Positions 2,780 through 45,343 of a stretch of DNA of 64,000 nucleotides are shown one piece after another. The notes under the pieces are model-generated. The model ran no database searches. It saw only the letters and a list, made by a program, of their open reading frames with translations, and was not told the DNA's origin. Origin of the DNA: Anthoceros angustus (lineage: Eukaryota; Plantae; Anthocerotophyta). The position numbers and the translations under genes were made by a program. The first letter of the stretch is position 1. The number at the start of each line of letters is the position of its first letter. The stretch lies in NCBI GenBank assembly GCA_010909165.1, contig VJWM01000107.1, positions 744,001-808,000 of the forward strand. Reading direction: 5' to 3'.

Positions 2780-4900
2780 TCCATAGAAGTACCACAACCA
2801 AGCCCATATGGAGAATGCCACCTAACATGGAAGAAAATGTTCTACAAGCATTCTTCATCCCTAGGACATGTGAACAAAGTCAGAGTTGCACACAATCCTT
2901 GGGAACGTGTGCAAGATTTCGTGGCAGGAATGGATCTGAATAGCCATAGTGGAGCACCTACAAATTTTGCACGAGCATGGACGAAGGGTCCAAGTCAAGT
3001 ATCACAACCCAATCAGCCTAAAGCGGATTCACCAATCATGGTAGTGAGGTATGTTGGGTTTGGTTTGTAGGAATGCTTTCTCTTATTTTGATTCACATGG
3101 CATGCCTTGTCGCCAACCACATGTCTTCCATAACTCAAAGCTTTCTCCAATAGTCTCTATTCTTGTAGAATTTTATACCAAATTATTCATCTTGTTGAGA
3201 AAATTCTAACGATGTTTTTTTCATTCAATTCTAAGCAACTTTAAATAAGATTTTGATTGAAACGTTTTGCTCACATGAAGGCTTTGATTTTTCAGCACTC
3301 TCTCTCTCTCTAGTTGTCACTAATGCAAATGAGCCATATACCAACTTTTTTTTTTAGTTGTCACGATCCTAATGGTGTGCTGTTTGTGCTATTCCAACAT
3401 AATTTGACTAAGAAGTAGAATGAAAACCATTTTCTCACAACATGGTTTTGATATTTTAGTGTTTTCTCAAGTCGTTACTTATCTGATCACTATATACCAA
3501 TTTTTTTGTCTCAACGAGACGAGCTGAATGGTATATTTTTTGTGCAATTTGGATATAATTTGGCTAGGATTATATCTCAAAACGCTTTTCCCAACTTCAT
3601 GACTTTTAGGTGCTCTCCTCACTTTTATGTTGCTTGTACAGGTATTGGTGTGGTTATGGGCCTAAAGATTATCATTCGATCATGCAAGATACTACTCAAC
3701 AACGTACTTTGCCTAACAAAAGGTGCCCACGGCTAAAACCTGGAAGGTGCATCAAATATAGTTGTCAGGCTAGTTTTACTATATAATGATTGCACTTGTG
3801 GCCGTTTGTTGCTAAGATTGTGCTTTATGAGAGTAGACATATTGATGTCAGGGGTCAGGTTTATCATGGTCCCTCTTACACTGACATAGTTTGAGATATG
3901 AGAGACCACATTTGTCAACGAATCCGCTGACAATATAAACACGCTTTCTTCTCTAGAGAAGAAAGCTTGGGTGAGATATTTTTTATATTGTCACGTATCT
4001 ATTGATGAGATTTTGCGACGTCATCAATTTTCTATTGTAGCTAGATCTTGTCCCTCTGTTTTATCAATCCATGAGAGCTATGTAAAGATAAGGATGACTT
4101 CCTCACACGGAATAATATTTACAATATAGCTAGAGAGGTAGACAAGAGAGAGTGAAGGTATCATGAACATGATAACCTCAGTGTGGGAATGTAGATGCAA
4201 TTACATATAGGATATGTGTTTCATAGGTCTGATGATGGAAAGCCTTTTTGCCTTAGATTGCAAACATCCTCCACGTTGAAGACTTGTATGCAACATGGAC
4301 ACAACAGTTTACTTACAATGGACTTCACTTTTGGAGTAAACAGGTAAAAGTATTAATTCTTTACTATCATGGTGTTCAACCAACACCATAATGGAATTCC
4401 AATTGCATGGCTTCTAACACAAGAAGTGACTATAAGAGCTTTAGTTCCATGGCTTACTTCTTCTCGCACGAGAGTTTTACAATCACCTGGCACCATATTA
4501 TAGGTTGCCATCTGCCTTCTTAGATGATGATTGTCCTGCAGAAATAAGTGCTTTGAGAGAGATCTAGTCACGTGATGTGCTGATCTTCTTGTGCTTATGG
4601 CACGTTCGCCGTGCCTAGTTATGAAATAAATTTGCTCAAGAAGTTCAAGAATGTGTAGGCCATGCATGCTATATGAGTTGAGTTAGGGCAAAGTATGTAT
4701 CTTCAAGGGGGACACACAACGGAGGACTCAATGGCTTTAGGAAATGAGCTTCTTCAAAAAATGTACAACAACTTGAGCCGAACGCAGCGGCAGTTTGTGG
4801 AATACATACAGCATACTTGGGAAGGCCAACTAGGTGAGAGTGATTGTTGTTATGTACTGCAAGAAGTCTACAAGCTTGTGTGGTATCGTTTGTTTTATAG
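2780..4900 (+). mobile_element. Decayed MULE/Mutator-type transposase gene (At1g60560-like SWIM/MULE family) with an intron
   Basis: Exon ~2780-3048 reads VRVAHNPWERVQDFVAG and ends at a GTATGT donor. After the TTGTACAG acceptor (~3640) come YWCGYGPKDY, HIDVRGQVYHGP, VSIDEILRRH, LLTMDFTFGVN, GIPIAWLL and DDCPAEISALREI*..FLCLWHVRRA*. These are MULE DDE and C-x-x-H motifs with several in-frame stops. Confidence 0.8.
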
Positions 4901-5551
4901 CGGAAGACTATTACACACAAACTTGTGCAAGCAATGAATGAATAAATCTCAAACAAAAATTGTTCATAAGTACATCATCTTGTAACCCTAAAATGAATAG
5001 TCACACATTTAAATTTAATATACTTAACTATGGGCAGGTTAAACGACTAACCCTAACACTCCTACTTAACCTAGCCGGGTTAAAAATAATTATTAAATGG
5101 ATAAACCCATAAATCCCGTGCCCCTGGCGATTCACACTCTAAAGCATGCGAACATGGAGCCCGTGAGCGTAAGCGCGAAGATGGAGCTTGGCGCAATAAT
5201 TATATGCGAGCTCGTAGCCATCTCCCAAGCCACAACCCTCCTCGCGAGACAAGCCATGGTGCGCACAAGGAACGGAGCACTAACCAGCCAGAAGAGAACC
5301 ATGCAACCCCAAATACCCAGACAACAGGATGCAGAGGAGCAAAGTACTCTGTCAGAGGAAAGCAGGGTGCATGTGATGTGGGATGCAAGGGGCGTCAAGG
5401 GACCAACCACTAGATTGGGTGAGCGAGAGAGGATGGTCGCCCTAGCCCTAGCAGAGGTTGAAGTAGGAAGAGCTAGAGGGGTAGCGGAGAAGGAGAGAAA
5501 AAAAGGGAGACCCATAACAATTGACAGGAGCCTAGTCCTACACCTTCAAGC

Positions 5552-6296
5552 ACACCCTCTCCCGATCATCCACATATGCATGCAGCTAAGTATGAGCAGA
5601 TGTAAGAAGAAAAGAAGCGAGCATAATGATGTGAACTTCTATCCAAAGTGCGTCGGAATCCTCGGAATCAATCTACCATGAATCCCAGACGGAGATCGCC
5701 TTGCGACGACGAAGCGAGTTGAGGTAGGTCACAGAGTATATGGCGAACGCCTCATACACACACGCGAGTCACCCCTATGACACAAAAATAGCGTTTCTTG
5801 CTTGAAGATGCGTTCAAAACAATAGAGTCTGTTTACACATGCTTTAGCTGCGACTTTTATCAACTACTTAACTACTAAATAAGTAGGCTACTTATAGATG
5901 CGTCTATGCTTAATGTCCTTCTTAACATAACTCTTCACGTTCCATTAGCATTTCAGTGTTTAAAATCATTTGAGTTATAAATCGGTAATTGCTAGAAATA
6001 TTCTTGAAAATAATAGTGTATTTTTCCACCTACATAATTAGATGGAAAATAACTTGTCTCGATATGCATATATTCAATAATGAAGTAAAATATGCTCTAC
6101 AGCTTATGTGTCTGCGTACATCATGACAGCTGTCGTGTGAAGTGAAAAAGGAAAAAGCAAATGGAGTAGTCTCGGCTGTCCCGGCTATCCTGACTCCCAA
6201 ATGACACCCTCTCCCGAGTATCAACATATGCATGCAGCTGAGTATTAGCAGATGTAAGAAGGAAAGAAGCAAGCATAATGGTGTGAACTTCTATCC
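5552..6296. repeat. ~92-bp direct repeat (5552-5643 and 6204-6296), probably LTR termini of the adjacent Gypsy element
   Basis: ACACCCTCTCCCGA...GTGAACTTCTATCC occurs twice with a few substitutions. The second copy abuts a purine tract on the minus strand (GGGGCGGAGGCGGGGTTGAGGGG, ~6297-6318) that lies downstream of the pol remnant. No clear TG..CA ends were found. Confidence 0.5.
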
Positions 6297-9484: not shown

Positions 9485-10079
9485 ATGAGGTTCTATCCCC
9501 TGGGACACCTGATAGGACTGGGACTAGCATAAGTGGGCGCTGACTGGGAAGGACAGGGAAGTGTTCAGACGGCGCTGACTGGGAAGGAAAGAGAAGTGTT
9601 CCTATGAGGCATTGACAGTCTTTGAAAATGACCCAAATTTTATTGATTTTCTGTAGCTGTATAGGTAGATAGTCAGGTCTGGATTTGTGGTACTGTGTGG
9701 AGTCAGTTTGTACACTGTCAGCATCGAATATGTATTGCGCTGTCGCCTCCACGGAGCACTGGCAGCATGTTGTTCCTTTAAAGCACTGAGCTGAGTATGA
9801 TGCAGGTGGAGGCCTGCACTGCACCATGTCGGTCCACCTGCTCTGTTATAAGGGTCCTAGGAGTACATAGTCTAGTTCTGCAAGAACGTTCCGCTAGAGC
9901 CCTCGCGGTCATGTCTGCAGATGAGCACTAGGCATTACTTCGTGGCTTTATTTGCGGATAGCGAAGAAGCATCACAGCAATTGCAGGCTGCAGCCGCGGC
10001 TGATGCTCTCCATCTTTCTGAAAATGCCCGTCACGTCGATCACCTCAGAAATTTGCAGGCAACCTCAGAGATTTGTCGT

Positions 10080-10220
10080 CACCTGCAGGCTACCCCAGTT
10101 GGCAAAGTGGCACCACCTCGAAGTACTATCCCAGCGCAAACAGAAGGAAAGAGCTCAACGCCTCTGCCGGCAATGCAACACGGGCGACGTAGGTGACGAA
10201 TCACACCTCATTTCAGGTGT
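10080..10220 (+). mobile_element. Possible LINE ORF2 C-terminal zinc-knuckle fragment
   Basis: WHHLEVLSQRKQKERAQRLCRQCNTGDVGDESHL resembles the HxLxVE..R.C..C....EDE.H tail of non-LTR retrotransposons. The match is short. Confidence 0.45.
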
Positions 10221-10719
10221 CCTGCCAAGAACTAAGGTCAAAACTCTCTCTGGTAAGCTACTCCAAACCCTATCCCGAAAAAACACATGCTTCAGACACC
10301 TAGGGCGTTCGCAACCTTCCTCAAAACCGCTGAAGGCATACAAGAAAGTCACCTTGAAAATCAAATGTCACCCTCCGGCTCTAACCAGACACAAACTTAG
10401 AACCTAAAAACTTAAACTTTTTCCAACTTTCGCAACCCGACAGACCCACACTCCCAACATCTCTTCTAGCAACAGCACCATAAATTCAACGAATCTTCCG
10501 GGTAAAAGTTCATTGCAAAAGAAACTACCCCAGACCCAAAGCAAAAATTTTACCCCAAAAATAATTATCCAGAGAAAATACGAACAAATATTTATAAAAA
10601 TAGAAAAATATGAAAAAAAAACAACAGACTGCAACATTTTCATGTAAAAGACTTGAAAAAACAAATCCATAATTTCAACATAAACACCCACATTTGTAAG
10701 GGATTTTTGAGGCAGAACT

Positions 10720-11200
10720 CCTTTATGTGGTTAAGGCCATCTCGTACCTACCTACTCTTTTAGCCACACTCTCTAGGGTTAGCTCAGTTAACCTATTCAT
10801 TGATAACCAAGCAGCTATCTTGCCTTTAATTGACACATCTGCGCGCTCCTCCCAGGCTATCTCAATACGGGCTCGGGCCGCTCTCCATGCCCTCTCTCTT
10901 GCTCACCCTCAAGTTTTCCTAAACCTCCACTGGATTCCGGGCCATAATAATGTAGCCGGCAATGAGATGGCAGAGTTACCGCTAAGGCAGCCACTCTTCT
11001 TCAATTTCCGATGAAAAACATACCTTGCTCATGTCCAGGCCAGGCGTCAATGATTCATGTGGAGTTCTGATTGGGCATATGGCTATTGGGGCTTATTTGA
11101 GCGATTCAACATCGCTTTGGAAACCCATTTGTCGGAAATGTATGTCTTAGAAGAAACCATGACACATCCTTGAGTCGATTGCTCGGCTACCCGCAATAAG
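10720..11200 (+). mobile_element. 5'-truncated LINE 3' end with RNase H and C-terminal knuckle (Tad1/I-group-like)
   Basis: VNLFIDNQAAI..SARSSQAISIR..LHWIPGHNNVAGNEMA(D)ELAKAAT (one frameshift), then GHMAIGAY(F)ERFNI..ETMTH. An A-rich tract follows at ~11460-11482. Confidence 0.72.
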
Positions 11201-11660
11201 TGGGACCAGATTTTTCAGGGCTCTTACTATGATATGCGCCAACTCCTCAGTATATCCAAACTCAGAGGGAAACTTATCTCTTACTTCAAGTTGATTGGCG
11301 ACTACTTTTAGTGCAGGTTCCTTAGCAAAGCCATTTAGTCTTATGTTCTTTGTTTGATCTACTTTCTTAGCTTTTACACTCTCCCAAATGTCACTTCATT
11401 CATGTTGTTGATTCTTGTTCAGGCGTCATAGCCTTACGGCTGCATACGCCTAATGATCTATAAATAAATATAAATAAATAATACAAGCTCGTCACTTTAG
11501 GACAAAAGGATTCCTCACCAACAAAACTTTTACACCATAATATTTTTTTTCTAAATAACACCTCGTGAGGGTCGGATCCCCGTCCTCACGGGGCAAGTAA
11601 GCTTCGACAGGTAAATGCATATATATATATAGAAGGAGATAATAATAGGATAGTAATTCT

Positions 11661-11662
<2 letters not shown>

Positions 11663-11743
<81 letters not shown>
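11663..11743. repeat. (AT)n microsatellite, about 40 units
   Basis: Uninterrupted AT dinucleotide run at the boundary between the gene island and the TE cluster. Confidence 0.99.
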
Positions 11744-11744
<1 letters not shown>

Positions 11745-11759
11745 CTTCGAACTGGGTAG

Positions 11760-13060
11760 CCACGACCCAAGGACATGTGCCAAGAAGGCGGCGGGCGTGA
11801 AGCTGCAGTGCGATTCGCAAGACTACTGGCGATTCTTGGCGTGAAGGATACCTTCCTGCATCGACATGCCTGACGCCCAAAGCGGTCATCTTCTCGGGCG
11901 ACCTCTCGGCAGTTCTCTTAGTCGCTCGCACTTAGGCACCCCGCTCTTTGGCACTTTCTCTTCCGAGGTTCGAGCGCAATGCCCGGTGATCTTCGACTCT
12001 TCCCGGCACGCCAATTACTCCTAAGCTCAGGAGCGGGGCCCAAGACAATAGTAGAGGTCTTGGAGCCCTGGCACCTGGTGGAGGAGAATATAGTGACCAG
12101 GCGCTACCCTAACTTCGACCCTTGGCCAGAGGAAGCGGGTGAGCTCGTGCAGGAGTAGCACCTGGACATCTTCCAGGCGGTATGGACCTACCTGGTCCGG
12201 GATTACGCCCGGAAGATGCTGGCGGCGGCGAGCAAGGCCGTTTGTTTGAAGAGCTTGAGGGAGGACCCGAGGCGTTGGACAGCTTCGCACGGTATACAAC
12301 CAGCCAGCGGAGGAAGTTGGGGCCGAAGGGGGAGGCCGCTCGTTGCGCAGCTTCCGGGCCTCCTGGGCTATCCGGGCGAAGATGATTCGCCCCCAGTCCG
12401 CCCTCTTGCCTCTCAGGAGGGCGTGCAGGAACACCAGAAGGTTATCCCCCATGAAGTCCACCTTGGTGAGCCTGTTCCAGTGGACAATGATTTTTGCCAC
12501 TGCCCTCACCCGCCGGTCTAGCAGGTCCGACATCAACCACCCGTTGGAGGACCTCCCCCGTCAACAGCAAACCCTTGGCCTCAGCCCTTTACCTTCCTTC
12601 GGGCTTTGCTCCCCATGTCCCCTTTCATCTTGCATGTCTGGGGACACCATAACCTCCTGAAGGAGGGAGAGGAGGAATGAGCCTCCCGACGGGCCACAGC
12701 CACCCAGGAGGGAGGAGGAATGAGCCCTCCCGACGGGCTAGCCACCTGAGGAGGCGGGATGGAGGCGAGAACCCACCCGACGGGAGGAGGACCAAGACGG
12801 GCGCAGGAGGAGGAAGATTAGGAGGGCATCCCTGACGCAATCCGCTTGGAACGGACCCGCTCCCCTCCAAGGGAAATATGGGAAGAAATTCCCGCTTCCC
12901 TCCTGCTGGTGCCATCAACGGAGCAGCAGCCCCGCTACAACATGAATGCGCTTAGTGACTGCCCGGTGGCAGTGTCCGAACCCCAGAGCCCCGGTGGGAC
13001 TAGGACGGAGGCGGCGGAAAGCGTGTGCCTAGCTCCACCGCTCCGGTGACAGCACCGGTG
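11760..13060 (-). mobile_element. Divergent fragment of an Athila-type ORF2 (homologous to 36.3-39.2 kb and 46-49.1 kb)
   Basis: 12027-12536 SDLLDRRVRAVAKIIVHWNRLTKVDFMGDNLLVFLHALLRGKRADWGRIIFARIAQEARKLR aligns by eye with SDLRRSSKGGSRIIVHWNRS..HALSGKRGKDYLRRLIEARKLR at ~38.7-38.85 kb. Confidence 0.65.
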
Positions 13061-13339
13061 CCCCTGCCCATGACAACGGAGTGGGCGGAGGCGGCCTTGA
13101 GGAGAGCGGAGAGGGAGCTGCCCAAGGCGCCGGAGGCCACTGGCAGCAGCCTCATCTAGAGCCAGTTCTCTCCCCTACGAGGAGAGGGAAGCGAGCTAGC
13201 TCCCGGACCCGTTCACCCCCACTGGACCCCTTCACCCCCACTGGACCCCAAGCGTCGGAGAGCGGAGAAGGAGTTGACCGCAAAACGGGCCAAGGAGGTG
13301 GAAGGACCTGCTCCGGATGGACTGCTTCTTTCCAGACTA

Positions 13340-27182: not shown

Positions 27183-30100
27183 TCATTGGTCATTATCGCT
27201 CACGCTATCATTGTCTTCATCATCCTCACCTATGATATCCGCATCCTCATCATCTTGACTCATGTTATCCTCGTCTTGAGCCTCACCTTGTACTATGCGT
27301 CTTCCACGTGCGCTTGTACCCACCACAATTTTCCATGCATTTTAGAATTCTCATACAAAAGACTTGCTCCACTTTCTCCGATACTAGTACAAATGGCTCA
27401 TCCTCCAACTTATCATTGGATAACATGACATCGTTAACCATGAACATACGAGATGTATCTGTTTTGATGGTCAGTGTGCTCTTTGTTCCATTGAGCCTTG
27501 AACCATCTCACCTTCAACACATTTACTTTTTAGACGGCCCTAAGTCCACCTCCAAAATCTTTTCCACCTTTCCAAAGATAGGGAAAAATGCTATAATAGG
27601 TTCGTGTCCCGATGTGAAACACATGCTTGGCTATATAGATGTTTTATAATGCTATCACATGTATTCTTTCCCTATCTGCATCTATAGTCCTTATATGATT
27701 TCCATATGCCCACATCATTTTATATGATCGCAGCTGAGAGAGGTCCTCGCACAATTGCCATCCAACCCATAGGTTTGTCTGCATTTCTTTCTTCGCTATA
27801 ACTTCATCTATCAACCATTCGCAAAAGTTGCTGCCCATACCGTCATACACTTTTCGCCATTTTTGAGTACACGCTGAGTTTTCCACTAACACTTTCCTCA
27901 TCTGCCATTTCCACATCATTCGGTCATAATTTTTGCCATTCCTTGCAATAACACCCACATTGGGTGACATCATCTTGATTTCCACACTCTTGGTGCCTCT
28001 TCATGTGTATTTCCAAAGAACTCGAGCTATAAAACATTATCTCTTGTGCTAAGTATCCTAAAGCCATGCTACCTTGTCGGGTCATCGAACAAGTCCCTTT
28101 AACACTTTCATGTGCCTTTCTAAGAAATACATCCATCGATATCGAGTTGGTCCACATAATTCAACCTCCCGCACAAGATGAACAACAACATGTACTTGAC
28201 TTGTCGAAAAGTCGTTGGAAATTCCCTCCAACACACACATGATCTCCACACTTTTCACCTTCATAGCTGGAATTTCATCCTTCGCAATTTCTTTTGAACA
28301 AAGCCACGAATAGCTCGGCAAGATCACATATAGCCTTGTGAACATCATGATGTATTAATCCTTTCAAGACAATTGGCCACAAATCCGTTAACAGATGGTG
28401 ATGATCATGAGACTTTAACCCTGAAATTCCCTATTCTCTCCCTTTAGAAAAACAACGCTTCAAATTTGACCCATACCCTGTAGGAGTACGTATGCTGCAA
28501 ATCCTTGTTCTCAATTTTTCCTCTGCATTAGCATACATTCGCCTCTTTTTGCTGCCATGTCCAAGAACCTGTGGTCGGGTGTCGTTATAAATGTCCGTCC
28601 CCTGGTTCGCCAGTTTTTATCCTTGCACCCCATTTACAATGTTTTGGCCTCTTTGTCTCCTTCCAACAGGCGATGGCCTCGCATGGGGCCACCAATCTTG
28701 TTTGGTATTTGAATACTCAAGATCTCTCGACTACCAAGGGAATCTTGATTCCCACATATGTGCCAAAATCATTGACTTACATTCTTTCCAATGTGCATGA
28801 TATCAAATAAGTGTCGATCAACAATATCGCAACCACCAAATAGCATGACTAAAAGTTAACCTTCATGAATAGCTATTAGTCTACCTACCGATGCTACCAA
28901 TAATATAATTAAAATATTCTTGAAAAGGGTAATACTTGCAAGACCCCATATGCATGCATACATACCTCCCAAGATGGAAGCTCCCAAAATTGAAGGCTCG
29001 TCGCTAGTAACACCCGTGGCTGCCTTCACCATTGTCTTTTGCATATTTCCGGTTAAAGCTTTCGATCATAATATCCTCCGGAGTTGGTGCATAGTCCGGA
29101 TGAATAATTTCCATCTCACCTTTCCATTGAATGAATCCCGCTCTTCCACTCTAAACTTGTGTTCCTCGGTAAAATTTTCTAAAATTCTTATCATACGTCA
29201 TTTTGTTTGTGAACATTGACTTTCTTGCTTCTAATTTGTCCCAACATATTGGACATGCCCGCTTCCCTTTTGTTTGCATTTTAGAAGTGAAAGAATATCC
29301 GGATAATCATGCATCGCCCACAACAATAAGGCCTTCAATTTAAATTGTCTTTGAGCATTTCCAATAGCCATAGAAGCATCTTGTACGACCACACCTTCCT
29401 CCCACAGTACCTTCAACTCTTCGATGAGTGGTTGAAATATATATCGCATCTTGACTTGGACCGGGAATAATCATTGACAACAATATATGCCCATTCTTGA
29501 TAGATAACCAAGGAGGCAATATAATTGATAAGAAGCACAGCCATATAGAATACCTAGAACTTTGGTGCCCAAAGGGATTAATCCCATCCGTAGCAAGTCC
29601 TAATCGAATGTTGCGCCTCCTTAGCAAACTCGGATAAGTGTTGTCCACATGTTCCCATGCATAGCTATCGATGGGACCCGCATAATCCCATCATTAGACT
29701 TATTTGTGGCGTGCCATGACATCATACTTGCTAGCTCCGGACATCTAAACATTTGTTTCAATCTAGGAATCAATGGAAAATATCAAGTAGCTTAACTGCA
29801 CACACTGCTTCTTCGTGTCAATTCGATACCTATGTTCCCACACATCTTGCGAATAGCAATTGAAAACTCGCTGTGAACAACATACAATCATCTTGACAAG
29901 CATGTATGGATGTATATGTTAGGCCAAACCCTTAAGCATCTTTTTAATTTCAGCCTACTTTTGGCAACTTGTTGCCAACTGGGAGGCCTAATTTGCCTAG
30001 TAATGATAAAATTGAATTCAAAGATGCATCCGACCAGCCATGCCTCCTTTGGATGTTCAATAACAATAAAATGAATGCCAATAAACTTATCTCGGCTCCA

Positions 30101-30303
30101 ACCCATAGAGGCGTAGTTCGGTGTGCATCGCCTTTAATTCCTCGTGCAAGGAATCGACTGTTCTTTAGTCATTTCGCGATGCGAAACCCCACCAAGTGCC
30201 TCCACCAACTCTATGGTCACTTGTTCGTCGGGATGAATGTTGACATGTTCTTCATCAACCTCAAAATGATCATCAACCTCAATAAAATCTTGTTCCTCTT
30301 CAA
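27183..30303 (-). mobile_element. CACTA TnpD/Tnp2 transposase core (Transposase_21, DUF4218 and DUF4216-like), frameshifted
   Basis: GLTY..IHACQDDCMLF..C..CGEHRY; RNIRLGLATDGINPF..ILPPWL..LSMIIPGP; FQPLIEELKVLWEEGV..LLWAMHDYP; VHVVVHLVREVELCGP..RWMYFLERHMKVLKGLVR; acidic C-terminus. CAG acceptor at 30306-30304. Confidence 0.95.
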
Positions 30304-30624
30304 CTGATTATTCAATCACACGCACAAAATAAATATCAAATAAGTATATAAAATATTGTAGTACTATATAGAAAAATTATATTATAATTTAATAACTTTA
30401 GTATAACCACTATTATTAAGGAAATATTGAACAACATGCAAAACTAAAAGGTTAAGAAGTCAAGTCGACAAGATATACTAATTGTTTTGTTGCGGATATA
30501 GTCAATATACACAAGGTACAAGACCCTCAACATCAACTCTTCTACATCCTACAACAAAAACTATTCCACATCCTCGCATCAACTTTGCCTTCAATTTCTT
30601 CCACTCCATCGTAATTTAATGTGT

Positions 30625-31339
30625 CTATGTACTCTTCCTCGGCCTTCCTTTTGGCTTCAAATGGTTCGGGTTATACCAATTGTAATCAACAAACAACTCT
30701 TCCCAGCATTAATGGTCCTCACCGCCCAAGTGCAAATCCAATCAAGATGGTCGTCACTTAGTAGCTCATGCCCATCCGACCTTTCTTCCCAAATGCAATT
30801 TTGCTTGATTGCGATATTTCCACTACTACTATTCATATATCCCGCCACATTCCCATATGCAACATGCCCATCGAGGTACTCAATTGGGCCATCATTAACA
30901 TCTTTACCGGAGTCTATTGAAAGTCAATGCATACCCGGAACTGGTAACTGTTGTAGTTCACTATCTTGTTATATTCTCCCTGTATACTTTGGACCCCAAA
31001 CACAAACAAAGGAACTCCATTCACATTATCTTTTCTCACTACGATTTTCTCCATGGAAAATAAACCCAACCCCATGGTCGGGTTTGTTGCCTCCTTCACT
31101 ATCCACCTTCGCCCCAATATAGAAATGACTTGTTAATAGGAATAGGTCCCTTCTCCACATTCCCCATTCTCTAGGGTACACGCCTTTCAAAAGATGCTTG
31201 TATAAAACAATAGCATCATGAGACTTTGGATCTTCCCCTCTTTTGGATGATAAGGAGGTGCAATAAAGGGTCCATGTCTGCCCTTTCCATCCAAAGGTTT
31301 TCCTACACCGCAAAGCCATGTGTCCACTCCTACGTTTTA
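30625..31339 (-). CDS. SET-domain (protein-lysine methyltransferase-like) exon with a C-terminal AT-hook-like motif, inside the CACTA transposase gene
   Basis: WIVKEATNPTMGLGLFSMEKI (GxGLF motif); EYLDGHVAYGNVAGYMNSS..NCIW (GNxAR(F/Y)xNHS-like); WAVRTINAG/EELFVDY with one -1 slip in a G run; then NWYNPNHLKPKGRPRKST* with the stop at 30627-30625. About four small frameshifts in total. Confidence 0.8.
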
Positions 31340-31595
31340 CTTGTTATAACATGCAAACAAACAAACTCCTTCCAACTATAAAAAAACAACCATAATTACA
31401 CATATGAATAATTAAACTACCTTTAATATAACAAGACAAACATACTTACCACAATTAGTATGCCACATCGTAATTATTCTATAGATAATATTATATAATT
31501 GCTTTATTATTGTATTTTCTAGCATAGAAGAAAAGGGCTCCATAATTACTTCATTAGTTTATTTCCTAGCATAGAAGAAAAGGATTGCAACTCAC

Positions 31596-31881
31596 GCTTG
31601 TGGCTACGGTGGTTCTCCTTGTTCGCTATTTCTTCTCCTCCTCCTCCTTCTCCTCGTCCTCCTTCTCCTCCTCGTTGTTCTTCTCCTCCTCGTCCTCCTT
31701 CTCCTCCTCGTTCTTCATCTCCTTGCGGTTCTCCACCGGGACTTCATTCTGGGAGGTAAGGTCCATTCTTGCGCAAATGTTTACGTACTTGGTTAGCTCA
31801 CGAACTCGCCTTGCACTCTTTGCACCAACATTTTGGAAAATATATTGGATATTTGGGCGCTTAAATCTACGAGCGATCCAT
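31596..31881 (-). CDS. First coding exon of the CACTA transposase (transposase-associated CxxC domain plus G/E-rich linker), degenerate
   Basis: ATG at 31881: MDRS*I..PKCWCKECK..VRKHLRKNGPY resembles MDRSWM..CPC..C..V..HL..G of CACTA N-termini. GTGAGT donor at 31595, phase 1. Confidence 0.7.
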
Positions 31882-32029
31882 AAGGACCTACCTCAACAAT
31901 GATCGTGGGTTAGCTTAAGCTCGACAACACTTGCCCCTCTTCACCGAGCACGTTGGAAAGTGCAGGCTACCTTCGATGAAGTGCTCCGGCCCTCGCTCCA
32001 ACCTCCGTGTCGAAATCCGGGCATAAATC

Positions 32030-32670
32030 GAGCCAATTCTAATCTAGAGCAATTCCATGCAACCGATAACGCGATACTCAAAACGCTTTACAAAGAGCAT
32101 AGACTGCAGCGGACTTGTAGCTATCTAGCATCCAGGATGGTCGATTTAGGTGTGCACCAGTTTTTATTGACCCTTGCTACTAGAAGGCCCTCGCCACGCA
32201 CGATGGAAGGCCCTTCTAGCTATGTAGTGGATGGTTAGTAGCTGGGACAAGAGAAAGGCCTCTTACGATCGGTGCTTATTAGGCGGTCAATCCAAATCGC
32301 TTTACAACACGAGGCGTTGCAAATCGGTTTGGGGCTCTCTTATCAACGCCTCTTATCAACGCACTCGCAGCAACATTTGCAACGCACTCGTAGCAGCCAA
32401 TTCTAATCATGAGCAATTGCATGCAACCGACAATACTCGGCGCTTTGCAAAGAGCACTGCTGCAGCGGACTTGTAGCTATCTAGCATCGCGCGGATGGTG
32501 CCGACCCTTGCTATGAGAAGGCCACGCCAATGGAAGGCGGCTTGGCCTCTTATCAACGCACTCGCAGCAACATTTGCAACGCCTCTTACAGTGCGGCGTC
32601 GGTCCAAAGCGCTAGCTAGCGTTACCGCTTTGGGCAATTTGCAAAGCATTCGTTGCAAAGCACCGTAGTA
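32030..32670 (-). repeat. Putative 5' subterminal repeats and degenerate terminus of the SET-bearing CACTA
   Basis: ~365-bp internal duplication (32030 and 32395) and TTGCAA(C/A)G motifs, ending in GCAAAGCACCGTAGTA at 32670. The reverse complement TACTACGG is CACTACGG with one transition, ~800 bp upstream of the ATG. Confidence 0.4.
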
Positions 32671-32789
32671 TGCTATTGATATAGCCTTAGCTTACTTAAG
32701 GCGCAAGCCTTTCCTTATTTCGTGGGACTCAAGATTGTGAAATGTGTGAGCAACTTTATATCAAAAGCTCGCATTTTTACATCACCCCG

Positions 32790-34170
32790 ATAGGCGATCG
32801 CCTTTGCCAACCTCGCATGACTTGGGTAGACTACGAAACCACATTTGTGATGAGTTCATTATCACTCGGATCCGGCTCCGGTCCGTATCGAGCATAGTCT
32901 TCACAAAAGCGTAAGGTGGCTCTCCTCCATTCGTGATGCCGATTAAAACCTTGAGCCCAAACAAAATCTACCTTGTTAGCATTTATCATGCAAAGAAATG
33001 ATCACTCAGACTTTTACACTTACGATAGAAGGAGATGATTAGGTTGGGCACAAGATCTATTTCTCCCGTCAAGTCGAGTCATCCGAGTTCCGCTTCTTCA
33101 CAAAAGTAAGCCCTTGGAGACCCCGGATCGAGAGTAGTACCAATCTGTGATGATAGCTCATCAAGGCGTGCTGGAAGCATGTGACCAAAAACAAGGACGA
33201 GTTCCATCCGGAAGGGTGGGACCCTTCTCTTTCTCCGAGGAAGGCTAGGAAGGACGAATGTTACACAACCCTTGTCACAAGGGTCAAAGTTTGCACACCA
33301 TGTGCATCACCTCCTCTTCATCACGCATCTCCTCCTCGACTGGGATCCACCTCCGGAAGGTCCTCGGCCGGCCAGTTGTCGGCCGCCATCACCTCCGGAT
33401 GGTTCTCGGCCACCGGCTCAGTTGTACCGCCATCGCTACTCAAAACGCACCCGGTCGCTTAACACAATCGGAGTTTACAACCGAGTTCACAATCGGTCGG
33501 ACTAACACAATCAAAGTGCATTTCACTTTGAGTCGCATAACCGCCGACTTGGGAACGGATCAGCTATAGAACTATAGTGTATGCACGAGTTCTACTGGAA
33601 ACAGAACAAAGTGACAGCCCCCAAGGAGCCCCTTACTCTCAAACTCCATGGCGTCAAAGAAACCATATGTGGGTCTTTCAACCGCCCTGCAGCATGAGAG
33701 TGGGTGGGCGGTGTCACGCGAACCTCGAAATGCTCGGTGCGATCGAGGATTGAACTCTCATTAGGTACCGCCTAGCCCGCTTGTCGATCGGCAACATCAA
33801 CAATCGGCATGATGATGAGTGCCAAGAAGACTTAAATTCTTTAGCAAGACTGCTTAAGGAGGGGCGAATCGAGGTTTTAAGACTCGGGCTCAAGTGGATG
33901 GCCGAGGAAGCATTGCCCCATTAGCCCTTATTCTATTCATTCCCACCGGATCTTTTACACATTAAAGGGGCACGAGTCCCAAGCAATAGCCTTGAAAGCA
34001 CCTAAGGGACAACATAGCTACGCTCCATACAATCCTCTATCCGCCATCAAAATATCTCCGAGGAGCACACTACGCCTCGTGCTCACCCGCTTGTCATATC
34101 TTGCCATTTTCATGCCAATGGTTTCTCAAAAGGAAGAAGCATTAAAGCTTTATTTGTAGGCTTGCATGGG
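32790..34170 (-). pseudogene. Unidentified intron-containing coding remnant; its 3' part is duplicated at ~35150-35585
   Basis: ..LPDGTRPCFWSHAS..DLVPNLIISFY|R FNRHHEWRRATLRFCEDYARYGP..IMNSSQMWFRSLPKSC. The intron runs 33023-32950, with GTAAGT donor, CTAAC branch site, AG acceptor and preserved phase. The family was not recognised. Confidence 0.4.
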
Positions 34171-34745
34171 TGTGGCGCGACTTTTGCCGATGGCCAGCGA
34201 CAATCCCGTGTCGCTGTAGGAAGAAGTCCGCTCCAAGGGAATGATAGGCCTGCACTGCTTCGTGTGATTCTACCGCCCTTAGCGCTGCTCGCCTCAACAC
34301 ACACACATACTCCTAACTACTCACAACGTTTCACCGTGACAGCGGTATGGCTAAACGCTTAAGGACCCGTCAGTCCAGACGTTTCATACATCCTCACGCA
34401 TCCTTCTTTCCTCTCTCCTCACGCTACACTCTTCGCCTTAGAAAAGACGCTGGTTACAGCCGACCTCCGCTGCTCCGCCGGCCTCCGTCCGGCTCTACAC
34501 GCCTCCCGAGTTCCTCCGGCTCACACGCTCCCTGCTCGGCCGGCCGCTCCGGACGAGCACGGTCACCGCCACCCTTCCCCGCACACACCACAACGCTGCT
34601 AAGTCCGCCACCGGACCTTGATCAATCTCCCGAGCCGTGGCTCGCCTGACTCAGACTCACGTTAGCAAGAAGACTCACAAAGGTCCGCAAGAACGCGCAT
34701 CAACACCAAGAGAAAGATGCTTTACTAGAGCTCACCCTCTTATCA
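34171..34745 (-). mobile_element. Athila-type LTR, copy 1 (about 30 bp missing at its right end)
   Basis: TGTGGCGCGACTTTTGCCGATGGCC at 34171 is homologous to 45421. It ends at CCCTCTTATC, where it joins the duplicated segment. Confidence 0.85.
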
Positions 34746-36208
34746 ACGCACTCGCAGCAACATTTGCAACGCACTCGCAGCCAATTCTAATCATGAGCAA
34801 TTGCATGCAACTCGACAATACTCAAAACGCTTTGCAAAGAGCACCGACCGCAACGGACTTGTAGCTATCTAGCATCGCGCGGATGGTGCCGACTATGAGA
34901 AGGCCCTCGCCACGCACAATGGAAGGCGGCTTGGCCTCTTACGATGTCGAAACATGAAAGCTGGCCTCTTACAAGTGCGTCCCAAAGCGCTAGAAGCGCA
35001 ATAGCTTTGGGCAATTTGCAAAGCATTCTAAAGCACCGTAGTATGCTATTGATATAGCCTTAGCTTACTTAAAGCCTTTCCTTATTATATGGGACTCAAG
35101 ATTGTGAAATGTGTGAGCAACTTTATATCAAAAGCTCGATGCCTTTACATCGATAGGCGATCGCCTTTGCCAACCTCGCATGACTTGGGTAGACTACGAA
35201 ACCACATTTGTGATGAGTTCATTATCACTCGATCCGCCCCGGTCCGTATCGAGCATAGTCTTCACAAAAGCGTAAGGTGGCTCCGTGTCTCCATTCGTGA
35301 TGCCGATTAAAACCTTGAGCCCAAACAAAAATCTACCTTGTTAGCATTTATCATGCAAAGAAAGATCACTCAGACTTTTACACTTACGATAGAAGGAGAT
35401 GATTAGGTTGGGCACAAGATCAGATTCCCCAGTCGAGTCATCCGAGTTCCGCTTCACAAAAGTAAGCCCTTGGAGACCGGATCGAGAGTAGTACCAATCT
35501 GTGATGATAGCTCTGCATCAAGGCGTGCGTGGAAGCATGTGACCAAAAACAAGGACGAGTTCCATCCGGAAGGGTGGGACCTTCTCAGGCGCGATTTCAC
35601 GATGGCCACCGGCGCGACAATCCCGTGTCGCTGTAGGAAGAAGTCCGCTCCCAAGGGAATGATAGGTTCGGCTATCACAAGCTTTCGTGATTCCTACTTA
35701 GCTAGCGCGCGCAATTTTCAACACACACACATACTCCTAACTACTCACAACGTTTCACCGTGACAGTCCTAGATGGCTAAAGGACCTGCTCATGTCCAGA
35801 TTGCCATACATCCGGCCCTCACACACCTGCCTTTCCTCTCCTTTCACACCACTCCTCGCCTTAGAAAAGACGCTGGTTACAGCCGACCTCCTCCGCTGCT
35901 CCGCCGGCCTCCGTCCGGCTCTACACGCCTCCCGAGTTCCTCCGGCCACACTGCTCCAAATGCTCGATGTCGCCGCCGCTGCTCCCGGACGAGCACCACC
36001 ATCACCCTTCCCCGCACACACCACAACGCTGCTAGGTCCGTCACCGGACCTTGATCAATCTCCCGGAGCTGCCGTGGCTCGCCTGACTCAGACTCACGTT
36101 AGCAAGAAGACTCACAAAGGTCCGCAAGAACGCCACCAAGAGAAAGATGCTTTACTTGGCGGTGCCCCTCAGCCCTCTTATGCGCGCCTCAAAAGGCTCT
36201 TTATTACA

Positions 36209-36299: not shown

Positions 36300-39214
36300 G
36301 TCCTGGCCCCGCCGGAATGGGTGGTCCAACTCCCCCGATCCAGTGGTGCACCCAATCGGATGATCCGTGAGGCGGGCCCTCCTCTCCCGAATCGTCACAC
36401 ATCGCGGTTCGACAACCGCTACCACGACGCCATCCTCCTCCGCCTCCTCGGGTCCTTCACGGTGGGGCCACCACCATCTGCTCCCCTAGCGTAAGTCGAA
36501 GGGGCTCCTCCGCCTCCTCCGCCTCCCTCGAGGTCTGCCTCGACTCCCAACTCGTGAGTCCGGCTTATTTCGAGTCCGCCGCCTCCTCCGGGTCCGGACC
36601 TCGTGGTCCGGACGACACGGGTCCGGACTCGTGGTCCGGACTTATTACGGGTCCGGACTTGTGGTCCGGACTTATTACCGAGGTCCGACTGTGGTCCGGC
36701 CTGGGTCCGGACAAAGTCCGACTCACGCCCACCCGGTTTCCTCCCTCAGGACTCCTCCGTGGCTCTCCTCAAGTCCTCCACTGCTCCCGATCGCCTCAAG
36801 TGACTCTGCTGGCCCCTCCTTCCATGGTGAGGTGCGGGTGCTTACCTCGATCCGCCTCCCTGCTCTCGCCTCCTCCGTGCTCCTCTCCGCCGCTCCGTCA
36901 TCTCCAAACAGGCCACTAGGGTCCCTGTCCGCCCCTGTGGCCTTCATCTCCTTCTCGAGCCTTCCAGGTCCGTCCGCTTGGCCGCCGAGAGGCTTCTCGT
37001 CAGAGCTCTGGTAATAGGCAAAGTCCGAATCGACTTGTTGAATTGCCTCTTCCACGTGTGCCCGAGCACCCGATACTCCTCCGCCATAAGTGTTCCGGAG
37101 CCGGGCGCTCGGCTTGTTGGGCCACCTCTCCGCCAGATTTGATACCGAGGGGGTCAGACACGCGAGGCTACAAGGCGGCCTCGGTCACCTCCTGCTCCTT
37201 GGGCCACCTCTCCGCCGCCTCCGCTGCTTCCTCTCCATTGCCACCATTACCATAGCGCAGCTGCTCCTTCCGCCTTTCTCACCGGACCAGCAGCTTCTTT
37301 CGCCCAGTGCTCGCGCCTCCGCTCATTCCGGCCTTTAGCTCCGCCTCCTCCGCCTCCTCTCCAGTGACATACCTCCGTCCGACTCGGACTTCCTCCGCCT
37401 CCTTCAGCGCAACGCCCAACTCCTTGGATAGTCGCCGATTTTCCTCCGCCTCGACGGAGCCGAGGCACTCTATTTCGTGCTCGAGGTCGTGGATTCTCTC
37501 GTTGAGAATCACCGCCGCTCCGACGCATCTTGGAGTTGTAGCTCCAGGTGTCCTTGCTGCCTCCATCTGCCGCCGCCTCTACTGCACTGCATTTCGAGAT
37601 CCCCTATCTCCCGAGTGCCGGCCTCCATCTCCTCTCCGCCGCCTCCTCTCCGCCGCCTCCTCTCCGCCGCCTCCTCTCCGCCGCCTCCTCTCCGCCGCCT
37701 CCGCCCGCTTGGCCTCGAGCCTTGCCGCCTCTTCCGCCTCTTCCGCCTCGCTCGCCTCCTCCCGAGTCCGCTTGGCGCCAAGGCTTGCCGGCCGCCTCCT
37801 CCGCCTCCTCTCCGCCGCCTCCGCTTTGCCGGCCTCCTCGAGTTCCACCATCCTCCTCGGGTGGCCTCCACTTCCGGGTCTTCTCCACTGTACAGAGACC
37901 CCAAAGCATTCCGTCCATGACGAGCTGACTCGCCGTGTTTCTTCCACGGCCGGTGAGGCCCCCACAAAGTCCGTAGTGGGAGCCGGCATTTCTCGGTCCG
38001 CCAAGGACCTCCATACCGCACCGAGTAAGTCCGGACTGTGGTCCGGACCTAATCGGGACCCTCGTCCCGAGTGGTGAGGTCCGAGTCTCACCCTCTTGGC
38101 CCTCTTGGCCTCTAACTCCTTTGTGCCCTCTTTCTCCGGGGCTCGGAGGAGGTGAGGGGTCCGGAGCAAGCTCTTTTGCCCCTTCGCGGGACAGGACTGC
38201 CTGGGTGGGCCGCTGACCTCCGCTCCTTGGGCCACGTCCCTTCGCCTCCTTACCGCCTCTTCCGCCTCTTGACCCGGTGGGTAAGGCACCGCACCTTCCG
38301 AGGTGCGCTGGTAGGCGGCACCGCCTTCCGCCTCGGCTCCCGCTGAGTTCCTCAGCCCGGCCGTGGTTGTTGGCCGCCCGCCGGCCGGAGCCGCCAACGC
38401 CTCCCAGATCGCCTCCCTCCGCCCGAGGGGGCACCAAAAGGAGGAAGGGGAATCCTCCCAAACTTCCTGGGTGGTGAGGGGTTCGCCCACGATGGAGTCC
38501 GGAATCCTCCCACCGTCCTCCTCCCGAGTCCGCTTGGTCAAGGACGACCCCCACCTCGCCCTTGCACGCCTACTCGGGGGCCCCCTTCCCGAGCGCCTGC
38601 TCAAGCTCTCCTCCTTCAGAGCTCGAAATGTCCCCATACATGAATCGTATGGGTCACCGATGGCGAGGGCTTCGCTCCTTAGCTTGCGTGCCTCGATCAA
38701 CCGGCGAAGATAATCCTTCCCCCTCTTCCCACTGAGCGCATGCGTGAATACCACAGTTATCACCAAGGTGATCCACCTTGGTGAGCGGTTCCAATGGACA
38801 ATGATCCGGCTACCGCCCTTACTCGACCGGCGCAGATCGGATATCAACCATCCGTTGGTTGTCCGCTGCGTTCCAGCCTCAAGACGCACCGTGGCGGCCC
38901 TATCTTCCCTTCGCCTTAAGGGGCTCGCACCACGCCCCTTCTTCCTCCTTCGGCGGTTGTAGGCCCTCGGGACCTCCAAGGTCCATCGCCTCGGGTCCTC
39001 CGGAGGTTCTTGGATCGGACCTCCTTGTTGATCGCCAAGATCTTCCGCAAACTCCGGACTAGTGACGTTGTCAAAGGTCCGACCATTTGGAACACGCCCG
39101 ATGCCACTCCCGCACCAATTCCCCGCCTCCAGCGGGCCCAAGTCCGGATAGCGCGGTCACAATGTTGCGCTCCACGAGGGTCCATGGCTCCTGACTCCGG
39201 CTTTTGGGTGCCAT
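36300..39214 (-). pseudogene. Athila-type ORF2 (putative plant transposon protein / 'env-like' position) with an E/A/R-rich coiled-coil tail, frameshifted
   Basis: ATG at 39214 MAPKSRSQEPWTLVERNIV..ELVREW (LVREFY-like motif of Athila ORF2), then IIVHWNR..HAL.G, and a later AEEAEEAARLEAKRAEAAE tract. The 3' end is uncertain. Confidence 0.65.
36590..36722. repeat. GTCCGGAC-core short tandem array (ancestral-size copy)
   Basis: About seven GTCCGGAC cores with variable spacers. Confidence 0.9.
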
Positions 39215-42800: not shown

Positions 42801-45343
42801 ATCTTGTTCGTCGCTGGAGTCCTCCGAGGTATACCCCGGTAGTGCTCACGCTTTTCCCACAATAGGTGTCCTTGCTCCGGTGATAGCAACCCTCCCTTCT
42901 CGCACCTTAGGGTCCCACCCACCGGCTTGAAGTGAATCTCCTTCCTTCCAAAGTGTAGCTGTCTGGCCAACCCAGCCATGGCCGCCCCAAAGAACACCTC
43001 ATACCCTAATGGTCCGGCGGTTTGATCACAACAAAATCCGGTTTGTAGGGTGCGCCTATGGTGGCCAAGACTCGGTTAACTCCCTCACGGATCTCTTCTT
43101 GACATGTCCGCCATTCTCGAGTCTTCGTTGAGGTTGAAGGATGTGAAGCCCACCGTGCCGTGGCTGATGAGGTTGACTCGGACCCGTGTCCAACGGTACA
43201 TCCTTGATGATACATCCAATCTCCACTTGTACCATGGGCGCCTGGGTCCGTATGGGACACCACCCTCACTTCCACTGCTACCCTTCACGGCTTTGGTGCT
43301 CCCGAGGCTGGGTTTCCCTAACGGCCCGACGGACCTCTTGTCGGTATTTGGGTTATCCTCGTGTCGAAAGGACACAAGGTGTCGATTCATCATCGTCCGC
43401 CATTAAAGGTGAGGCTTCTACCCCAATCGAGGATCCTGCTGTCCTCATCCTCTCCCGGTCACTGTTCGGTATTCTCCGGATGCTTGCGCATTTCCTCCTG
43501 CAACATCTCGGTCACCTCCGGACTACGTCCGGAAATCGCCGTGCGGAGGCACCGTCCTTCTCCTGTCCTGGGAGAACTTCCTTGGGTAATCCCTCGGCGA
43601 GCTGCCCACCTCCTTCATCGGTCGGATCCTCTGCTGGTATTTCCGTTTGATTGCCTTCCTCGGCGTCCGTGACGCTTCCTCCAGCCTTGTTCTTCTTCAA
43701 CTGGCGCCTTTCTCGTCGCTCCTTCCTTCGGCTACGAGTAGACACCTCCAAGATTTCCACGCCCGACTCCCTTCCTTTCGACACCCCCACCGTACCTTCT
43801 TGTTCTTTTCCATCTCGCGTACCTCTGGGAATCTCTTCCCACTCCGCCAACTGAGCATCTTCGACTTGCCGTACGGTAGCCTCTTAGGAGGTGGCGTTGG
43901 TGGTCGGGGTTCTCCGCTTGGTGGCCATATCCCCTTGCGGGGTTGGGACATAGCATCGCCATATGCCCACCGCTTGCGCCGCCACACCTCGTCCCCATTA
44001 CCCCGCCTGGGTACGGACACGCGTTGGAGTAATGGCGGATTCCGCAGCCCAACAGACCACGGCCGACGGAGGATACGAAGGGCTCCCATGCGGTCTTTGC
44101 ATCGGTGGGGCTGTATGACGGACCTCCGGTTGGCGGATACATGGTTTTGGGATATCGCGGCCCGGAGGGGCTTCACAGCGATAGGCCTCTTCCCATTGCT
44201 CCTCGGCCTCCTCCTCGTATTCGTAGTCCACTTGATGCACCGGCCTTGAGGCGGTTGGACTTCGAATGGCGTTGTCGGCACACGGCACACGAGATGCGTC
44301 GCCGTAGTCGGTGTTTTCCGCCGCTCTCGGTCCTTAACCTGGTTTATCGCCAGGTCCTCTACTCTCTTTATCACTTTTCCAGTCCTCCGCACTGCCACCT
44401 CCTTTGAGGGAGTCGGGTCCGGAGCTTCTCGGACCGTCTGGTGTCACCACCTCCTTCTTACCGCTTCTTTTAGCCGGGCCTTCTTGCTCTTCTTGCGGGG
44501 ATACTCTTCCTCGCTAGAGACCTCTCTCTTCTTGGACGACCGCTCCTCCTCAAGACACCTCCGATTGGTCTTCCTCCTCCTCAAGACTCTTCCTCCTGAG
44601 TCCCGAACCCCGCTTCTTCTTCTTCTTCTTGCCTCCTTGAGCGGATTTCTTTATCCTCGATGTAGCGATTCCTCGTAGTTTTGGCCGCTCGACCGCCTTG
44701 CCCACGTCCTTCCAGCGCAGACGCGGCTCGGCCATGGGTTTGGCTAGACCGCCGAACCACCGCATCTTGCATGTATGGGTTGGATGCCGATCCTCGGGCA
44801 TAGAACCGCTCGATGTACGAGCCCAGCTTCTCCTTCTTCCTCGCTTGATTTTCCAACTTTGATAATACATACCCCTCCCGGTCGATCCTCGAAACCGTTC
44901 TAAGAAGGCATTTTCAAAGCTTCAAACGAGGCGGGTGGGGCATTCTCCGGTCGGTACTTTCTCCGATACCATTGAGCATGTCCCCTGAGAACCCCTTGGA
45001 AAAGCTGGATGAGTGCGCGGCCGCCCTCTCCGTTGAAGTTGGCTTTGGACACGAAGTCCTCCACAAAGGTCTCGCATCCCGCTCCTTCTTCCCTCCGAAT
45101 ATGGAGTACGCTTGTTTGGTCGAGGTAGGGGCCATGGTCACGCCATCGAAGGGCGTGGTGTCCTACCTTCTTCCGTGCCCCTTGTACCCGTACTCGTCTT
45201 GGTCCGACACCGACCACGTTCTCCCTCCTCCGATCGACGGTGCTCTCGTTGGGTTTGACGCCTCTCTCCCCGGCTCGGAGAGCACGCGAGGTGACCACGT
45301 CCGATCCTCGACGGTTCACTCTTGACCGTCGCTCGACCGCCAC
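39860..45343 (-). pseudogene. gag-pol of the Athila element, many 1-nt frameshifts
   Basis: gag FVEDFVSKANFNG..LFQGVLRGHAQWY; knuckle ~44.2 kb; protease D(T)GSGVNLI ~43.15 kb; RT GEHKIDLKPGAVPVR..DGYSGYNQ..KTTFTTEWGTFAY..ILDDF; integrase H..H..GSWWPTMYGDTHRFVKCDAC..FEKWG, VSDRGTHF; GPY/F-like tail ending ~39860. Confidence 0.93.

Follow-up and report, generated by a model that had tools for sequence, protein, structure and literature searches.

SET genes have been described in HarbingerS elements and in MuDR elements of the oomycete Phytophthora (Kojima and Jurka 2014, Repbase Reports; cited in PMC12730594). As characterised in the citing article, these are autonomous DNA transposons with a SET accessory gene beside the transposase, as in the bryophyte family reported here; compared by description only, they differ from it in superfamily (PIF/Harbinger and MuDR rather than Tnp2/CACTA) and in host, which is an oomycete for the MuDR elements. 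SET genes have also been published in Helitrons and in red-algal Plavaka, and one of the latter, PAG2 of Bostrychia moritziana, resembles the bryophyte family in being a CACTA/EnSpm element with a SET (PF00856) accessory gene (bioRxiv 10.1101/2025.02.11.637652). The Plavaka SET domain, including that of PAG2, is, however, fused to a DNA methylase (PF01555), whereas the bryophyte SET domain is joined to a small Cys-rich module and Pfam searches with four full-length proteins of the family (P0065, P0092, P0066 and P0095) returned PF00856 only, with no PF01555. The preliminary description of the present locus had stated that no plant CACTA family carrying a SET domain was known. For land plants this held, as no such element was found in the full-text literature searched, but it did not hold for the red-algal Plavaka, which belongs to CACTA/EnSpm. 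The part for which we found no precedent is accordingly the SET accessory gene in a land-plant CACTA element, SET-carrying transposons of other lineages having already been published.

Physical linkage of a SET domain to a transposase is also found in SETMAR, the primate SET-mariner fusion. SETMAR is a domesticated fusion gene of the host, present as a single copy and equipped with the canonical pre-SET, SET and post-SET regions, whereas in the bryophytes the SET gene and the transposase occupy distinct ORFs of a mobile family with multiple copies. En/Spm, with its products TnpA and TnpD, is likewise a CACTA element that makes more than one product from one strand. Its TnpA, however, binds DNA, lacks a SET domain, arises by alternative splicing and is encoded for the most part 3′ of the transposase ORFs; in the bryophyte family the extra gene lies upstream of the transposase, and splicing shared between the two would be a conjecture. 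The plant host genes ATXR5 and ATXR6, which encode H3K27 monomethyltransferases with PHD fingers, gave the best PDB sequence matches of the family profile, yet these were not significant (E 0.15–0.26); the similarity was set aside and no membership is claimed.

The VANC proteins of the Arabidopsis VANDAL elements (MuDR) offer a functional parallel. VANC is not known to belong to the SET proteins, nor to contain a recognised enzymatic domain. Its effect, a sequence-specific loss of DNA methylation, has been demonstrated, whereas the role of the bryophyte SET protein is predicted here from sequence. VANC proteins are anti-silencing accessory proteins (PMC5735166, cited in PMC12730594), portrayed in the citing article as element-encoded and thought to act on the epigenetic state of their own element, and this analogy stands behind the mechanism proposed below.

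Results

A SET exon upstream of a Tnp2 transposase

We analysed a 64,000-nucleotide stretch of the Anthoceros angustus genome (hereafter the window). Taken as a whole, the explanation that we favour and hold to be reasonably likely assigns minus-strand positions 30625–31340 to an accessory gene with two exons, of which they form the SET exon, in a bryophyte CACTA/EnSpm (Tnp2) DNA transposon family. Exon 1 encodes a Cys-rich, zinc-finger-like module (CxCxxC...CxxH) and exon 2 the SET domain, and the gene, which has its own stop, lies 0.2–0.6 kb 5′ of the transposase gene and is read in the same direction. The features of the locus, in the direction of reading, are:

31596..31881, minus strand: putative exon 1 of the accessory gene (tentative), with ATG at 31881 (MDRS...), Cys-rich CWCKEC, Glu-rich tail and GTGAGT donor at 31595
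31341..31595, minus strand: putative intron, 73% A+T, with GTGAGT donor and AG acceptors at 31376, 31340 and 31330
30625..31340, minus strand: SET exon, recognised by its motifs and relatives; the finding of this study
30308..30624, minus strand: spacer from the SET stop to the transposase coding start, from alignments and low contig depth (34.5)
27243..30307, minus strand: Tnp2-type (CACTA/EnSpm) transposase gene, from Pfam and frameshift-aware alignment to the Sphagnum-type transposase of metagenome locus L011
30137-30307, minus strand: acidic start of the transposase
29875-30135, minus strand: conserved N-terminal region of the transposase
29234-29690, minus strand: Tnp2 core, PF02992 (Pfam, 6.5e-23 and 2.2e-10)
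28085-28354, minus strand: DUF4218, PF13960 (Pfam, 3.6e-17)
down to about 27243, minus strand: C-terminal DUF4216-like part, aligning to the PF13952 ORF of L011

All motif strings quoted in the preliminary description were located on the minus strand, that of the transposase, with the SET hallmarks in the order it had given. The GxG motif MGLGLF occupies 31058–31075, followed by YLDG (30867–30878), GNVAGYMNSS (30825–30854, with NSS at 30825–30833), AVRTINA (30705–30725) and EELFVDY (30682–30702), the last of which contains the ELxx(D/H)Y motif with its conserved Tyr; the stop codon closing the exon is at 30625–30627. The Ser codon at 30828–30830 takes the slot of the His in canonical SET domains. 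Also confirmed was the position of this stretch between the first exon, with its ATG at 31881, and the Tnp2 core at 29234–29690.

The SET exon of the window contains no continuous ORF, its motifs being scattered over three frames, and AVRTINAGEELFVDY is unbroken only past the last frame change (30704). A frameshift-aware alignment to the relative L004, read through with X at its stops, placed seven frame changes in the exon (31301, 31219, 31154, 31110, 30934, 30906 and 30704) and, despite these frameshifts, showed no in-frame stop across about 235 codons. The two sequences were 48% identical over 225 aligned residues, from 31334 to 30645, and tblastn recovered one single-frame HSP with an E value of 5.6e-20; at the sequence level the similarity is far beyond chance. 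The stop-free pieces of the window returned no Pfam match at E ≤ 1 and no PDB sequence match, because the frame breaks chop the domain into short out-of-frame bits. In a protein-language-model (ESM) search with the window's own piece, SET clusters made up 89 of the 100 nearest, with a top score of 0.96.

No convincing pair of CACTA terminal inverted repeats or 3-bp target duplication was found between 20–27.4 kb and 31.8–42 kb of the window. That the SET gene lies inside the element is suggested by its repeated adjacency to Tnp2 across loci. Another repeat occurs 5′ of the element, at 32028–33229 and 34736–35586 (88.9% identical over 906 bp). Its nearer copy starts at 32028, some 150 bp away from the exon 1 ATG (31881), and this repeat, which is unrelated to the element, may have truncated or disrupted the element on its 5′ side. 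Farther along the window, a 520-aa minus-strand ORF at 37579–39141, of low complexity and rich in Arg, Glu and Gly, lies in a block of 61–63% G+C (36–40 kb), and a zinc-finger-like candidate at 45003–45119 was discarded as a weak match that is not a zinc finger.

Identity of the domain

The preliminary description had proposed a SET methyltransferase-like exon, and the relatives of the window copy bore out the domain assignment. Five of them (P0008, P0011, P0066, P0065 and P0018) scored 27.3, 30.4, 32.9, 24.0 and 23.4 bits, respectively, against PF00856, above its gathering score of 22.4 bits, as did positions 1010–1249 of L004 (24.5 bits), which align with the window stretch bearing NSS and ELFVDY. 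Comparison by hhalign of the family alignment (A3) with two canonical SET proteins gave probabilities of 96.2% and 96.9%.

An AlphaFold2 model was built with A3 for P0011, an intact Sphagnum-type relative rather than the window's own protein, and reached modest confidence (pLDDT 58.8, pTM 0.59). A Foldseek search of the PDB with this model produced 110 matches at E ≤ 0.001, and all 50 of those listed were SET domains, led by MLL1, SETD8 and NSD1/2 and including EZH2, PRDM9 and DIM-5; the best match had an E value of 2.1e-5 and TM scores of 0.45/0.58. An earlier model of the truncated 124-aa piece of L001 was uninformative (pLDDT 40.5). Pfam, profile comparison and predicted fold on the relatives, and the language model on the window's own piece, agree that the family carries a genuine SET-type domain.

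A family in mosses and liverworts

A phmmer search with an 88-aa core piece of the window against 1.84 billion representative proteins recovered only P0002 and P0003 as true relatives, each of which derives from a Logan assembly of a public run; the third match, P0001, was a spurious repetitive SEA-domain protein. The Logan contigs L001–L004 and L006 bear the same gene. L004 reads in one frame of 353 codons from CxCxxC through the SET domain, with three stops. It was considered as a spliced cDNA, and the DNA alignment showed merely an internal deletion leaving an 18-nt intron remnant. L003, a contig of SRR33208289, has undergone bisulfite or enzymatic conversion (C 7.9%, T 38%); its stops and some of its residues are artefactual, and L003 and its protein P0003 were excluded from the alignments. 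The cytosines left in L003 may show where the element was methylated in the sample concerned.

A profile built from alignment A1, which consisted of stop-free pieces, reached a much larger family. Its matches were proteins of 160–211 aa from Sphagnum and peat metagenomes, several with precomputed PF00856. Intact family proteins of 190–350 aa, recognised by Pfam SET, came from six Sphagnum species (S. balticum, S. jensenii, S. magellanicum, S. compactum, S. troendelagicum and S. tenellum) and from the liverwort Calypogeia fissa. The Sphagnum and Calypogeia members were identified by cluster look-up and by a search with P0065, an annotated S. magellanicum protein of 328 aa; the Calypogeia protein is P0108 (351 aa, 60% identical). 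Clusters at 90% identity, drawn from Sphagnum genomes and peat metagenomes, had 360, 168, 112 and 75 members.

In every locus with enough flanking sequence, Tnp2 was found downstream of the SET gene, on the same strand and 200–570 bp away:

L005, S. balticum chromosome: SET 10001-10579, Tnp2 N-terminus 10783-11316, DUF4218 12216-12440
L006, Logan contig: SET ending at 4625, Tnp2 N-terminus 5196-5596
L007-L010, L012 and L013, metagenome contigs: SET followed by the Tnp2 N-terminus
L011, ENA metagenome: SET 3117-3695, then ORFs with precomputed PF02992, PF13960 and PF13952
L014, Calypogeia fissa: exon 1 10001-10231, SET exon 10318-11169, Tnp2 11539-13098

This recurrent adjacency in Sphagnum, Calypogeia and the metagenomes excludes the refuting outcome named in the preliminary description, a host gene captured once and missing from other members. 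L011 was suspected of containing a second, inverted copy, which proved not to be there.

Between young Sphagnum copies dN/dS was 0.8–1.2, as expected for copies decaying after insertion. Between distant members it was low, at 0.16 for Sphagnum against Calypogeia (191 codons, dS 0.94) and 0.18 for L004 against L001 (240 codons), which implies that the SET gene has been needed by the lineages producing new copies; these ratios show purifying selection on the gene along those lineages. For the window against either liverwort-type copy pN was 0.32–0.35, and synonymous sites were saturated so that dN/dS was not computable. The moss–liverwort dS, calculated over the SET exon of L005 (S. balticum) and L014 (C. 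fissa), was only 0.94, which fits slow bryophyte rates and also horizontal transfer of the element.

Relation of the SET gene to the transposase

The SET exon had initially been taken for an exon embedded in the transposase gene, a view that the relatives do not support. In every one of them the SET ORF ends at its own stop 0–45 codons past the (D/H)Y, and the transposase ORFs open with an ATG of their own 200–570 bp past that stop. Annotated stand-alone models from Sphagnum and Calypogeia (P0065, 328 aa; P0097, 343 aa; P0108, 351 aa) combine the SET exon with a Cys-rich exon in which CxCxxC and CxxH are ten residues apart. The window has a matching layout, with an AT-rich (73%) stretch between the donor at 31595 and the acceptors near 31340. 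The separate stop, together with annotated models that join the upstream Cys-rich exon, argues for an accessory gene rather than a transposase exon, and a SET gene separate from the transposase gene is the reading favoured by these sequence comparisons.

In exon 1 of the window, CWCKEC lies at 31813–31830 on the minus strand and is followed by a Glu-rich run. L001, L004, L006 and the Sphagnum and Calypogeia members also have CxCxxC ahead of their SET exon. The likeness of the window exon to those of the relatives was marginal (frameshift-aware scores of 48–51 vs a shuffled maximum of 38–47); its raw ATG frame contains stops, which can be avoided by allowing two frame changes. An intron occurs at the equivalent place in the relatives, being about 205 nt long in L006 and located at 10232–10317 in the Calypogeia locus. 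The intron region is at 3816–4000 in L006; in L004 it has shrunk to the 18-nt GT...AG remnant (284–301), which contains a stop, and this subfamily has thus nearly lost the intron between zinc finger and SET domain. A search of the ESM atlas with the zinc-finger part gave no usable match. As far as this evidence goes, the "first exon" of the window would belong to the SET gene.

Exon 1 could instead be shared between products, with splicing producing a zinc-finger-SET protein in one case and a zinc-finger-(SET)-Tnp2 protein in the other, in the manner of TnpA and TnpD of En/Spm or of a still-mobile SETMAR-like fusion. We consider this quite improbable. The exon, with its MDRS start and CxCxxC, does recall the N-terminal transposase-associated domain of Tnp2 proteins (PF13963), a domain that the transposase ORFs of the SET-linked family lack; the match of PF13963 to exon 1 of L001 was not significant (E 0.085; 13.5 bits, cut-off 27.7), and neither exon 1 of L004 nor residues 1–90 of P0065 matched it. 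The frame is open for 19–43 codons 5′ of the transposase ATG in L005, L008 and L006, but all members keep a stop directly past the SET domain and the annotated models mostly stand alone. SET and transposase were not seen in one reading frame in the window or in the relatives, with the sole exception of the chimeric model P0101 of S. jensenii (404 aa, UniRef name "Transposase"), in which the initial two thirds of the SET domain, preceded by the zinc-finger exon, run directly into the Tnp2 N-terminus. P0101 could represent a deletion copy, an artefact of ab initio prediction or a genuine fusion transcript. Two further proteins that have only the first exon in common, P0122 and P0116, proved to be frameshifted SET genes and not zinc-finger-Tnp2 products. 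A Ser-rich leader seemingly shared by the SET gene and the transposase ORF was discarded as not significant (E 0.53).

Frame breaks in the window copy

Besides the seven frame breaks of the SET exon, the frameshift-aware alignment to L011 revealed at least 14 in the neighbouring transposase, one of them at 29955. Contigs from a short-read DNA run of the same organism were placed on 27200–32000 (n = 527) and differed from the window at 91 indel places, mostly of 1–2 bases, and 14 substitution places; several contig pieces had no mismatch and only 1–3 gaps. One run that may derive from RNA had no coverage of this stretch, which counts as evidence in neither direction. The contigs inserted a C behind 31154 (198/198 depth), coinciding with the frame break at 31154, and another behind 29953 (174/174 depth), coinciding with the independently found break at 29955. 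In the transposase, contig indels fell at 29668, 28758, 28669 and 27677 in addition to 29953. The indel-rich differences from the contigs, and the presence of seven frameshifts without a stop, point to a repeat in which the assembly has introduced indels, and the seven frame breaks are probably such errors rather than signs of decay. Repeats of this assembly seem to contain many indel errors of 1–2 bases; the broken frames here should not be taken for decay, and those elsewhere in the genome may be artefacts too.

Contig depth was 130–540 over the SET and transposase parts vs about 31–35 in the spacer, which indicates a multi-copy family with a spacer common to fewer copies. The window copy is thus one member of a multi-copy family in the A. 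angustus genome, and the high-depth contigs may stem from sister copies.

Alternatively, the window copy could be a decayed pseudogene whose frameshifts are real and which encodes nothing, whatever the rest of the family does. Such an interpretation would accommodate the number of breaks in both genes, the stops met when exon 1 is read in its raw ATG frame, the failure of the window search to find inverted repeats around the element and the unrelated repeat adjoining its 5′ side at 32028. It is at odds with some 235 SET-exon codons free of in-frame stops despite seven indels, with same-organism contigs that match base for base and differ by indels, two of these at frame breaks, and with an indel-to-substitution ratio of 91:14 that is unlike natural decay. 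On this evidence we judge real decay of the window copy unlikely and prefer assembly errors as the source of the breaks.

SET motifs and predicted function

The SET motifs of the family are conserved with one exception. GxG is kept in all A3 members (as GLG, GYG or GWG), the Asn of NHS is kept throughout the family, and the C-terminal Tyr is present in every A3 member whose C-terminal part is available. The His of NHS, on the other hand, has given way to another residue in every moss and liverwort member (INSS, INST, INSM, INGT, INSP or INSN), and hhalign placed the family INS opposite the NHS/NHG of canonical SET domains. The change of NHS to NSS noted at the outset is real, and its family-wide occurrence marks the window NSS as a family trait under selection and not as a lesion of one copy. 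The post-SET zinc cluster is absent, the proteins ending 0–45 residues past the Tyr.

The Cys-rich module and the SET fold, encoded by the element and selected along with it, suggest a protein that is brought to the element's DNA or chromatin. We tentatively propose, as a possibility that falls somewhat short of probable, that the protein would bind S-adenosylmethionine and methylate lysine. The zinc-finger module would bring it to the element's own DNA or chromatin, and the SET domain would methylate a lysine on a histone tail or possibly on the transposase; the element might thereby shape its own chromatin state, favouring expression or transposition.

A catalytically dead SET domain would offer a different role, in which the fold is kept and the protein acts as a binder or decoy of histone tails or of host methyltransferase partners, or as a DNA-bound scaffold for the transposase. 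The NHS His is commonly mutated to inactivate SET enzymes, and here it is Ser or Gly in every member; the missing post-SET cluster is in line with an inactive domain, and purifying selection is equally compatible with a nonenzymatic role. Active PR/SET enzymes such as PRDM9, however, also lack this His, and PRDM9 was among the structural matches of the family, in which GxG, Asn and the C-terminal Tyr are all conserved. We consider the dead domain a serious alternative, though rather less likely than a lysine methyltransferase acting on the element's own chromatin.

Discussion

The strongest form of the methyltransferase proposal would have a land-plant transposon encode an active, self-targeted histone methyltransferase, whose zinc finger binds subterminal DNA and whose His-less SET domain writes a mark that counters silencing, with exon 1 perhaps shared by splicing. 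We regard this full version as doubtful. If true, such a self-targeted methyltransferase would be the enzymatic counterpart of the VANC anti-silencing proteins. To our knowledge, transposons with chromatin enzymes of their own are rare, and almost none of these has been tested.

The family is abundant, occurs in mosses and liverworts and is under clear purifying selection, from which it follows that the SET protein matters to the element. With its compact size of 330–350 aa, this protein would make it possible to test directly whether a land-plant transposon writes histone marks.
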